A stretch of DNA of 64,000 nucleotides from Oikopleura dioica (taxonomy: Eukaryota > Animalia > Chordata): contig OU015568.1 of NCBI GenBank assembly GCA_907165135.1, positions 10,912,001 to 10,976,000 on the forward strand, read 5' to 3'. Below, in pieces: positions 57,685 through 59,491 of the stretch. The position numbers and the translations under genes were made by a program. Below the pieces are notes generated by a model. It searched no databases. It saw nothing but the letters and a program-made list of their open reading frames with translations, and was not told the DNA's origin. Positions within the stretch are counted from its first letter, which is position 1; each line of letters begins with the position of its first letter.

Positions 57685-58027
57685 GAGACGTCTCGATATA
57701 CGAAGAATGCTTAAAGCCTTCTAAAAGGAAACAAATTTAGTTTCTAAGCGGAGAAAAAGTCGTCTTTATAAAGAGCTTTGAATGCAACATTTCGTCAGGA
57801 CGCCCACGCGCAATTGAAAAGTCATTCAAAATTCAAACGGAATTACGAACTCATAAGAACACGATTATTTGCTTTGATTGAAATCTAATGAAACGAAAAA
57901 ATCGAGTCAAGTCTTGACTCAAGATCGGGACCTGCTAACGTAAGAACTGCAAGATATGAGTCAGTATGTTCGGTCAGAAGATGTTTATTCCAACAACGAA
58001 AAAAGGCAACCGCAAACACGACACAGT

Positions 58028-58840
58028 TTAATAGATTCGAGTGGGCTTGCCCATGGTGGACTTGACGTAGAGAGCCTTGACGTTCTGCCAGTTCTTCTTG
58101 AGGAGGGAGACCAAGAAGTTGATGGACATGGTGAGGTTGTTGACGAGCTGATCGTCGTTCATGTCGACGTTACCGACGGCAACGTTGAGGCAGAGGACCT
58201 TCTTCATCTGGAACTTAATGGTAGCCTTGATTTCGTTGACCTTGGCCTCCATCGATTCGCTGTGGGTCAACATGGTGGGGAACTTACCAGCCTAGAATTT
58301 TATTAGTTAGTGAGGAGTGGACTTAGTTTGAATCTTACCTTGTTGAGACCGGGACCGAGAAGTCGAGGAATCTGCTTGATGATGGTCTCGGAAGCGAGGA
58401 AAGCATCGTAGCTCTTGGCGAGCTTCTTAACAAGCTTCTTGTCCTTGTTGAGCTTCTTGAGATCGTCAGTGGACTTGGAGTCGACACCGATCTTGTTGGC
58501 CTCATCGATATGGGCGGCATCACCGATGATGCAGATCTTCTGCTTTGGTCGGGGGACGTTGGGGAGCCTTAACTCCGATTTAGTCGGGAAAAATCCCTCC
58601 CCTGAGATTTAAGACTCCGGGTGCGAGTCCGTAACCATGTGAAAGGCTACTACTAGAATCATTCTAGTTCGAAGAGACTTACTTGACGGTACCGCTGAAA
58701 CGCTTGTCTTTTGCGGGATCGTAGTTCTTGAGGGTGATCTGAAGCTCAACAGTCTCGAGGAAGTTTCGCTTCTTCTCGGCAGAGCCCTTGAGGAGAGCAT
58801 CGACAGCTTCGTAAAGAGTCTCTCGGGAGACCTTGGACAT
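58028..58840 (-). CDS. RPL10A: 60S ribosomal protein L10a (uL1)
   Basis: [13 protein letters not shown]...[25 protein letters not shown] | LPNVPRPK...[11 protein letters not shown] | AGKFP...[11 protein letters not shown]. Confidence 0.98.
58573..58606 (-). promoter_or_regulatory. Putative uL1-binding rRNA-mimic RNA element (L10ARE-like) in an RPL10A intron
   Basis: Sense strand CUCAGGGGAG-GGAUUUUUCC-CGACUAAAUCGGAG has the GGGAGG...CCGAC..RAAAU core of the L1 stalk. It abuts the 3' splice site of intron 58568-58682. Confidence 0.55.
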
Positions 58841-59080
58841 TTTGTATCCGGTTTCTTATCTAAATAGAGCGAAGGTTAGCTACGGAAAGTGCCGGATATC
58901 TCTCAAAGGGGCAGCGGACTTCAGCGGGGAGTCCAGTTTGAGCACTCTAACTGGTGCAAAACGGGCTACAGGGGAAGTAGCTGCCTACACATTTAGAGAC
59001 GCGGCTTGAGGGTTTTTAGCAAAGGCTCGCGCCTTTATTTAGGCCCAGTCTGGCAGGAAAGGGGGACAGAAAAGAGTAAT

Positions 59081-59491
59081 TTATTCCTCATCCTCTTCCT
59101 CGTCCTGGTTGATCTGGAAGTACTTGAGCTCGTAGGAGGCCTTGGAGTTGGCGACGACTCGGAGCCAGTCTCGGAGGTTGTTGGCCTTGACACATTTTAG
59201 ATTTTTGAGACAATTATCAATTTTTACCTTCAAGTACTTCTTGGCGAGATATTTAAGGTATCGCTTGGAGAAGTCGATGTCGGAGGTGACGTTGATCTTG
59301 GTCTTGTTGGAGGTGACGGAGACGTTCTTGCCGAGGTTGCCAACCTTGCCGTCAACCTTGATCTTCTGCTTGAGGAACTCCTCGAACTTGGAGATGGACA
59401 TGATGTTGTCCTCAACTGGGTGGTGGCAGTCGATGTGGAAGGTTCGGATAGTCTTCTTGGACTTCTTGCCCTTAGCTGCCTTGGGAGCCAT
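59081..59491 (-). CDS. RPL22: 60S ribosomal protein L22 (eL22)
   Basis: [14 protein letters not shown]...[11 protein letters not shown]...[15 protein letters not shown] | [12 protein letters not shown]...YELKYFQI; 42-nt intron at 59186-59227. Confidence 0.98.

Follow-up and report, generated by a model that had tools for sequence, protein, structure and literature searches.

An orthologue of the uL1-responsive element L10ARE in a 115-nt RPL10A intron of Oikopleura dioica and its probable action through intron retention

The first intron of the Oikopleura dioica RPL10A gene, which encodes ribosomal protein uL1 (L10a), contains an orthologue of L10ARE, the intronic element through which uL1 is known to control how its own transcript is spliced in C. 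elegans and mammals (Takei 2016, PMC4937301). The gene lies in a 64-kb stretch of genomic DNA, here called the window. Intron 1 is under purifying selection and is normally spliced with high efficiency, and a mature mRNA that keeps it occurs in a sister lineage. These results are consistent with a working L10ARE circuit in compacted form, to which we assign a probability of roughly 0.6, in which binding of uL1 would prevent removal of the whole intron; the binding itself, its dependence on uL1 dose and the fate of the retained isoform are the parts of this reading that we infer.

The layout of the gene and of its first intron is given in Table 1. The translation of exon 1 agrees with RPL10A N-termini in alignment. 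The RNA data comprised raw poly(A) reads from X24, a related strain, together with single-cell reads (X21) and the assemblies of two marine metatranscriptomes (X1 and X5). The exact 115-nt and 47-nt junctions are used in the X24 and X21 reads and in the X1 and X5 contigs, with 3231 X24 reads over the junction of intron 1 and 4380 over that of intron 2. Since 481 X24 reads run past 58861 and there match, in reverse complement, the O. dioica spliced leader, the 40-nt sequence of which is printed in PMC6883708, the results indicate that the RPL10A mRNA is trans-spliced at the AG of 58861-58860. A cDNA contig of a sister lineage (L103) reads leader, ATAAGAAACCGGATACAAA and ATG. The RPL22 gene (window 59081-59491, minus strand), with one in-frame intron of ~42 nt, is located head-to-tail directly upstream of RPL10A, and the pair is kept in every larvacean-like contig of sufficient length (L001, L004, L010, L015 and L101).

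In the window, candidate introns of the form GTAAG[TA]..YAG span 34-66 nt, and intron 2 has 47 nt, so that the 115-nt intron 1 is more than twice the usual size. The original prediction, made from the window sequence, had given the intron the same boundaries as the junctions in the reads, had put it at about twice the local length and had described serial hairpins; the intron was found to fold into four of these with a minimum free energy of -36.1 kcal/mol (z -2.7), a value reached by 2 of 200 shuffled sequences. The last 40 nt read CUCAGG GGAG GGA(UUUU)UCC CGAC UAAA UCGGAG UUAAG, as that prediction had given them. The element is indeed present in these last ~40 nt but extends beyond them: what is conserved as a unit is the 3'-terminal 64 nt, in which hairpin P1 is followed by a linker, by the GGGGA box with hairpin P2 and by a tail, and two further conserved hairpins lie upstream of this unit.

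Table 1. Positions of RPL10A features in the window.
Feature	Position	Strand	Basis or remark
RPL10A (uL1/L10a) gene		minus	exons 1-3, introns 1-2; sequence and RNA junctions
Spliced-leader trans-splicing AG acceptor	58860..58861	(-)	X24 reads and leader match
Mature 5' UTR	58859..58841	(-)	
Exon 1	58683..58840	(-)	158 nt = 52 codons + 2; ATG to second base of codon 53
Intron 1	58568..58682	(-)	115 nt, GTAAGT...TTAAG, phase 2 in codon 53
In-frame TAA if intron 1 is retained, directly after Lys53 (AAG-TAA)	58679..58681	(-)	sequence; 53-aa ORF
Hairpin 1 (ACUAGAA uga UUCUAGU)	58652..58668	(-)	fold and alignment
Hairpin P0 (GUAGCC ... GGUUAC), directly 5' of L10ARE core	58631..58650	(-)	fold and alignment
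L10ARE core, 38 nt against the full 39-position model	58594..58631	(-)	model R1
Hairpin P1 (GACUC gcacccg GAGUC)	58613..58629	(-)	covariation
GGGGAGG box	58596..58602	(-)	invariant in 20 R1 training sequences
Hairpin P2 (GGGA uuuu UCCC)	58586..58597	(-)	closing G-C pairs = last two G of box
GACUAAAU, 3' strand adjoining P2; its GA opposite GA of GGGGA	58578..58585	(-)	
CGGAGUUAAG, 3' arm of possible closing helix, then acceptor AG	58568..58577	(-)	
Exon 2	58339..58567	(-)	
Intron 2	58292..58338	(-)	47 nt, ordinary; unconserved control
Exon 3 with stop TAA	58028..58291	(-)	
AATAAA downstream of exon 3	57989..57984	(-)	

L10ARE is known from intron 1 of C. elegans rpl-1, intron 3 of human RPL10A and intron 2 of fly RpL10Ab, and the intron carrying it is defined by lying between the second and third nucleotides of codon 53 (PMC4937301). 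Exon 1 of the Oikopleura gene contains 52 codons and 2 nt (AA/G, Lys53) and the position of its intron 1 is therefore identical. Introns at codon 53 were gathered through exon-wise protein searches and contig look-ups, yielding ~30 distinct loci with the same element, nGGACCUUnACCCAGGGUC-uUAAAACAAaU-GGGGAGGUA, all from metagenomic eukaryotes apart from the C. elegans and fish loci added later. A covariance model (R1) trained on 20 introns of other phyla only, all non-larvacean, gave one significant match in the 64-kb window, located at 58631..58594 over the full model length with 26.9 bits and an E value of 2.3e-6; the second-best match in the window scored 12.7 bits. The same model matched C. 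elegans rpl-1 intron 1 (GCA_000002985.3, chromosome I) at 806-843 with 46.7 bits, 47 nt after the donor G at 759 compared with the published distance of 45 nt (PMC4937301), and a fish RPL10A intron with 48.8 bits, results which tie the element of the fetched loci to the published L10ARE. Weaker R1 matches contain the variants GGGAAGG, GGGUAGG or GGGCAGG in place of the box.

The phase-2 position in codon 53 combined with the R1 match identifies the intron 1 element as an L10ARE orthologue, a conclusion about which we have little doubt. An L1-stalk mimic linked to L10ARE had been proposed; the link is upheld, although the element is not the separate analogue then envisaged but the orthologue itself. 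Comparison with covariance models of L10ARE and L1-leader families had been suggested as a check, and the R1 match bears out the former, but a scan of 57900-59000 against Rfam 15 at E<=10 returned no L1 or ribosomal-protein leader family and no LSU rRNA family, only two irrelevant weak matches. With the exception of L070 (~103 nt), all other fetched R1-positive introns are longer than the 115-nt intron 1. Two copies of the L10ARE core were present in each of five species: L068 (285-331 and 436-474), L087 (1504-1542 and 1588-1628), L092 (1505-1543 and 1593-1634), L037 (1064-1101 and 1149-1186) and L050 (884-922 and 1385-1423, the extra copy ~300 nt upstream of exon 1). Both cores lie within one intron in the four species other than L050, and the available part of Takei 2016 (PMC4937301) makes no mention of tandem L10AREs.

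The structure of the element is supported by covariation. Among 39 distinct sequences, 99% of cells kept the P1 pairs, and no shuffle reached the observed covariation score; most taxa have C-G at pair 4, where the Oikopleura-like lineages have U-A, and pair 5 is U.G or C-G. P2 lies beyond the published 39 nt and is closed by the last two G of GGGGAGG. Since MAFFT was unable to align the variable P2 and R2, a 3-seed covariance model of the region, did not generalise, P2 was analysed by a script, the minimum-energy rule of which over-extends the hairpin in several loci, those of the window and C. elegans among them; over the 34 loci examined, its length was 10-41 nt where it was clearly delimited. 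Across these 34 loci the third pair was U-A in 14, C-G in 9, G-C in 4 and A-U in 4, and the base after P2 was G in 18 and A in 11. Hairpin 1 has one compensatory change, at its innermost pair, where the A-U of the window is replaced by G-C in L004 and L102, and in P0 a G.U pair is replaced by A-U in L102 with the loop variable in length; a hairpin at the place of P0 was also seen in other phyla, by eye only.

Two further pairings of the box were encountered. The fold of the four-lineage alignment paired the donor-proximal pyrimidine run CCGUCUUC (58668-58676) with GGGGAGG (58596-58602; columns 9-16 with 85-92 of alignment A8), with one change of U.G to C-G. This modeled pairing excludes P2, so that a two-state fold may be possible, and has almost no covariation. 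The GGGGAG of the box is also complementary to CUCCCC at the start of exon 2 (G/GCUCCCC; window 58561-58602, minus strand), a pairing which would enclose the acceptor and which appeared only as an over-extended P2 in the script.

The element is kept in four further Oikopleura-like lineages, represented by L001 and L002, by L004 (GCA_977009715.1), by L101-L104 and by the X24 reads. Between the window and either L002 or L004, intron 1 is 83-85% identical, as opposed to 69% at fourfold-degenerate sites and 48-55%, effectively random, in intron 2, and intron 1 is under purifying selection. Within the last 45 nt of the intron the X24 reads differ from the window at three positions, located in the P2 loop, the tail and the acceptor. 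Sister lineages have UUUAG or UUCAG at the acceptor, and the tail following GAC is UAAAU, UAACU or UUAAU according to lineage and never the GAAAU of the rRNA type. The contig L001 (ENA ERZ976220) matches the L002 lineage from exon 1 to intron 2 and encodes an exon 3 protein identical to that of the window; it represents either a recombinant haplotype or a chimera in which the metagenome assembly joined two lineages.

Conservation among larvaceans, which the original prediction had named as a check, is thus found in these four lineages but does not extend to all relatives. L009-L015, with an intron of 127-144 nt at the same position, contain only a P1 of the Oikopleura type (GACUC/GAGUC) and UUAAAA, followed by AAUGCAAGURCGUC, and the 102-nt intron of L018, also at this position, shows a P1-like hairpin by eye only; neither contains the GGGGAGG/P2 half. 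With P1 and the UUAAAA linker as all that is kept in two more distant larvacean-like species, this half is dispensable in some relatives. The AT-rich 914-nt RPL10A intron at the same position in L005-L008 has no recognisable element. In the nematodes L098 (C. elegans, 760-762) and L016 an in-frame stop lies directly at the donor (AGG TAG), as does the larvacean AAG TAA, and it is because of an in-frame stop at the donor that many of the metagenomic matches are exactly 53-aa ORFs.

In bacteria and archaea uL1 is known to control translation of its own message by way of a copy of the site that it binds in rRNA, and mimics of that site occur in L1/L11-operon mRNAs of both domains. One motif common to rRNA and mRNA is recognised by domain I of uL1 (PMC2175363). 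The site in E. coli 23S rRNA reads GGUGG(H77)-GA-GGCU..(H78)..AGCC-GACCUUGAAAUA-CCACC, and GGGAGG..CCGA matches the E. coli rrn segment once only, at the L1 stalk. Oikopleura intron 1 reads GG-GA-GGGA..UCCC-GA-CU, the C. elegans L10ARE continues as GGGGA-GGCAA..UUGCC-GCUUUGAAAUA, the fish RPL10A intron contains ..UGGAGCC-GGCC..GUGAAAUGG, and a mouse 28S fragment (printed in PMC6052916) reads GCCGCCGGUGAAAUACCAC. Judged from sequence, the GG-GA 5' strand, the helix closed by G-C pairs and the GA-C(C/U) 3' strand of the L1-stalk type all appear to be present in intron 1, with predicted pairs G82-U101, G83-C100, [G84.A99, A85.G98] and G86-C97..A89-U94. The layout GGGGAGG...CCCGAC...AAAU, which had been likened to the uL1 site in rRNA, is present, and its GGGGA-P2-GAC part resembles the H77/H78 junction of the E. 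coli L1 stalk.

In Oikopleura the H77-like closing helix (CUCAG/CGGAG) contains a mismatch, is weakened further by a U-to-C change in sister lineages and lacks covariation support; the GAAAUA loop is replaced by the lineage-specific tails given above, and for the additional 5' hairpin P1 and its linker no rRNA counterpart was identified. The bare motif GGGAGG-N(4-30)-CCGAC was found once in the window against 0.20 expected and at least once in 19 of 100 shuffles, which is not significant window-wide, and since the word pattern alone is not significant, the argument for an L1-stalk likeness is based on its place in the conserved element of the uL1 gene and on the architecture shared across phyla. 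The place of the element in the uL1 gene's own intron, combined with the R1 match, is far beyond chance.

A more extended reading is suggested by these comparisons, and we hold it tentatively, as somewhat less probable than an even chance. The 39 nt published as L10ARE may represent only the 5' half of a larger structure present throughout the metazoans (P0, P1, linker, GGGGA, P2 and a G(A)C..GAAAU tail), the 3' half of which would be a true copy of the uL1 site in the L1 stalk; Oikopleura would then have a minimal form, with the copy overlapping the branch-point/acceptor region and with whole-intron retention in place of an alternative donor. Takei et al. describe L10ARE as unrelated to the L1 stalk and as insufficient in a heterologous context (PMC4937301). 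A literature search found no statement contrary to the former description, and the extended reading appears to be new within the literature searched.

Splicing of intron 1 was ~99% complete in X24. Evidence for the retained form was obtained from two 906-nt contigs, L103 and L104, which originate from two JGI samples, are 2 SNPs apart and belong to a sister lineage rather than that of the window. Each begins with a template-switch adaptor and the complete leader, continues through the 5' UTR and exon 1 into an unspliced intron 1, and then has exons 2 and 3 directly joined, AATAAA and a poly(A) stretch, indicating that a mature mRNA keeping only intron 1, with the frame stopping after Lys53, occurs naturally in that lineage. 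Retention with an immediate in-frame TAA, as had been anticipated from the sequence, is thereby documented. The X24 poly(A) reads covered the 3' part of intron 1 to a depth of ~18-30 versus ~3,400 over the exons, corresponding to retention in ~0.5-1% of transcripts. In this single bulk poly(A) run such a level would also fit the usual background of unspliced RNA, and the intron coverage is under-counted since the strains of the RNA data are 90-95% identical to the window; intron 2 was unusable as a retention control in X24 because in that strain it is too diverged to map. No alternative junction at intron 1 rose above misalignment noise among the ~3,200 X24 junction reads and none was present in the contigs, the minor joints in the reads all carrying extra letters typical of misaligned strain polymorphisms. 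Of the two splicing outcomes considered in the original prediction, retention was thus found and alternative junctions were not.

The architecture of the intron differs from that of the known circuit. The C. elegans L10ARE is a 39-nt stretch (39-40 nt) located 45 nt from the upstream donor and between two alternative donors, and use of the downstream alternative donor gives an unproductive mRNA (PMC4937301). The Oikopleura element shares with it the gene, the intron position, the 39-nt core (GGACY..ACCC..GRGUCUUAAA..GGGGAGG) and an unproductive isoform with an early stop, whereas the second 5' splice site of the two-donor architecture is absent, the P2 end of the element lies 18 nt before the acceptor, P1 has lineage-specific compensatory changes, and the unproductive form is retention of the whole intron. 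Since the element abuts the 3' splice site and a second donor is absent, the earlier characterisation of the arrangement as a 3'-splice-site variant of the circuit is a fair description. The branch point lies probably in or adjoining 58578..58585, the GAC-UAAAU strand, a placement that is by inference because the branch consensus is weak in this genome. A reading of GACUAAA/GACUAAC as a yeast-like branch site was dropped, as CTAAY is present in only 3 of the 31 candidate short introns of the window.

In Oikopleura the element is compacted, the donor being followed by two hairpins and then by P1, the UUAAA linker, the GGGGA box, P2 and GAC-UAAAU, with no second donor. In the circuit proposed, excess free uL1 would bind the GGGGA-P2-GAC part and block removal of intron 1 by covering the branch-point/acceptor region which that part overlaps or, alternatively, through the same unexplained repression of the upstream donor as in other animals. 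The intron-retaining mRNA would stop at the TAA after Lys53 with no uL1 made, and is a likely target of nonsense-mediated decay. The logic would be analogous to that of the L1-stalk mimics in L1/L11-operon mRNAs, in that free protein acts on a copy of its rRNA site in its own message, with the difference that the output would be splicing and not translation. Yeast Rpl30 and Rpl22 and human RPS13 are ribosomal proteins that block removal of an intron of their own (cited in PMC4937301 and PMC13034042), and in the proposed model excess protein would likewise act on a structured mimic in its own pre-mRNA so that the intron stays. The protein and RNA motif are different, and the sites in those genes are at or near the 5' splice site or within the intron, whereas the Oikopleura element overlaps the branch-point/acceptor region.

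Other explanations were weighed against this circuit. A regulated switch of the nematode/vertebrate type, with uL1 diverting splicing to an intronic donor further downstream (GUUAAG at 58573, for example, or a non-GT site), is the mechanism published for L10ARE (PMC4937301). O. dioica is known to use some non-canonical introns. The sole GU downstream of the element is that of GUUAAG, 5 nt from the intron end, which reads GUUUAG or GUUCAG in sister lineages and is used by no read, and this donor-like site, put forward in the original prediction, was rejected; since the minor joints are attributable to strain polymorphisms and such a donor would have no acceptor before that of intron 2, the switch is largely refuted and very improbable. 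That the resemblance is due to chance, or that the intron is the host of a snoRNA or miRNA, is scarcely credible. The bare L1-stalk word pattern is, as stated, not significant window-wide, but the R1 E value, the orthologous position of the intron and conservation in five lineages argue against coincidence, and a snoRNA or miRNA host was rejected since the Rfam scan at E<=10 returned no relevant family and no C/D or H/ACA boxes were seen by eye.

A structure that acts independently of uL1, either as a platform for another splicing factor or as an RNA switch between P2 and the pairing of GGGGAGG with the donor-proximal pyrimidine run, would account for the CCGUCUUC pairing and its single U.G to C-G change in the four-lineage fold, and Takei et al. 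suspect that additional factors are needed for L10ARE action (PMC4937301). We consider it improbable given that in vitro binding of C. elegans RPL-1 to L10ARE is direct and specific (PMC4937301) and that the alternative pairing is confined to Oikopleura with almost no covariation. An inherited L10ARE without feedback, the hairpins of which only aid constitutive removal of an unusually long intron, for example by bringing donor and acceptor together, with the retained mRNAs as by-products of slow splicing, is unlikely. It agrees with the ~99% splicing and lack of an alternative junction, with a fold that pairs donor-proximal CUUC with GGAG adjoining the acceptor, and with loss of the GGGGAGG/P2 half in other larvacean-like species. 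Against it, what is conserved is sequence and not pairing alone, the same bases being invariant from nematodes to fish (GGGGAGG, ACCC and GUCUUAAA); the intron is moreover better conserved than fourfold sites, 115 nt have been kept in a genome that shrinks introns to ~45 nt, and retained-intron transcripts were abundant enough to yield full-length contigs in two samples.

The results extend L10ARE to the tunicates. Its survival in a genome that has lost nearly all dispensable intron sequence argues strongly for a functional element. Oikopleura provides a natural minimal version, with 115 nt, one donor and one acceptor, that separates the action of the element from the choice of alternative donors, and intron 1 is a small construct suitable for binding, structure and reporter work. 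The animal element has so far been described as unrelated to the L1 stalk (PMC4937301). In nematodes, a fish, Oikopleura and metagenomic eukaryotes the core is followed by a covarying hairpin closed by the GG of GGGGAGG, and in several of them then by an rRNA-like GAC/GAAAU. Overall, this comparative evidence would make directly testable the idea that the same protein-RNA recognition may have been reused from bacteria to chordates.
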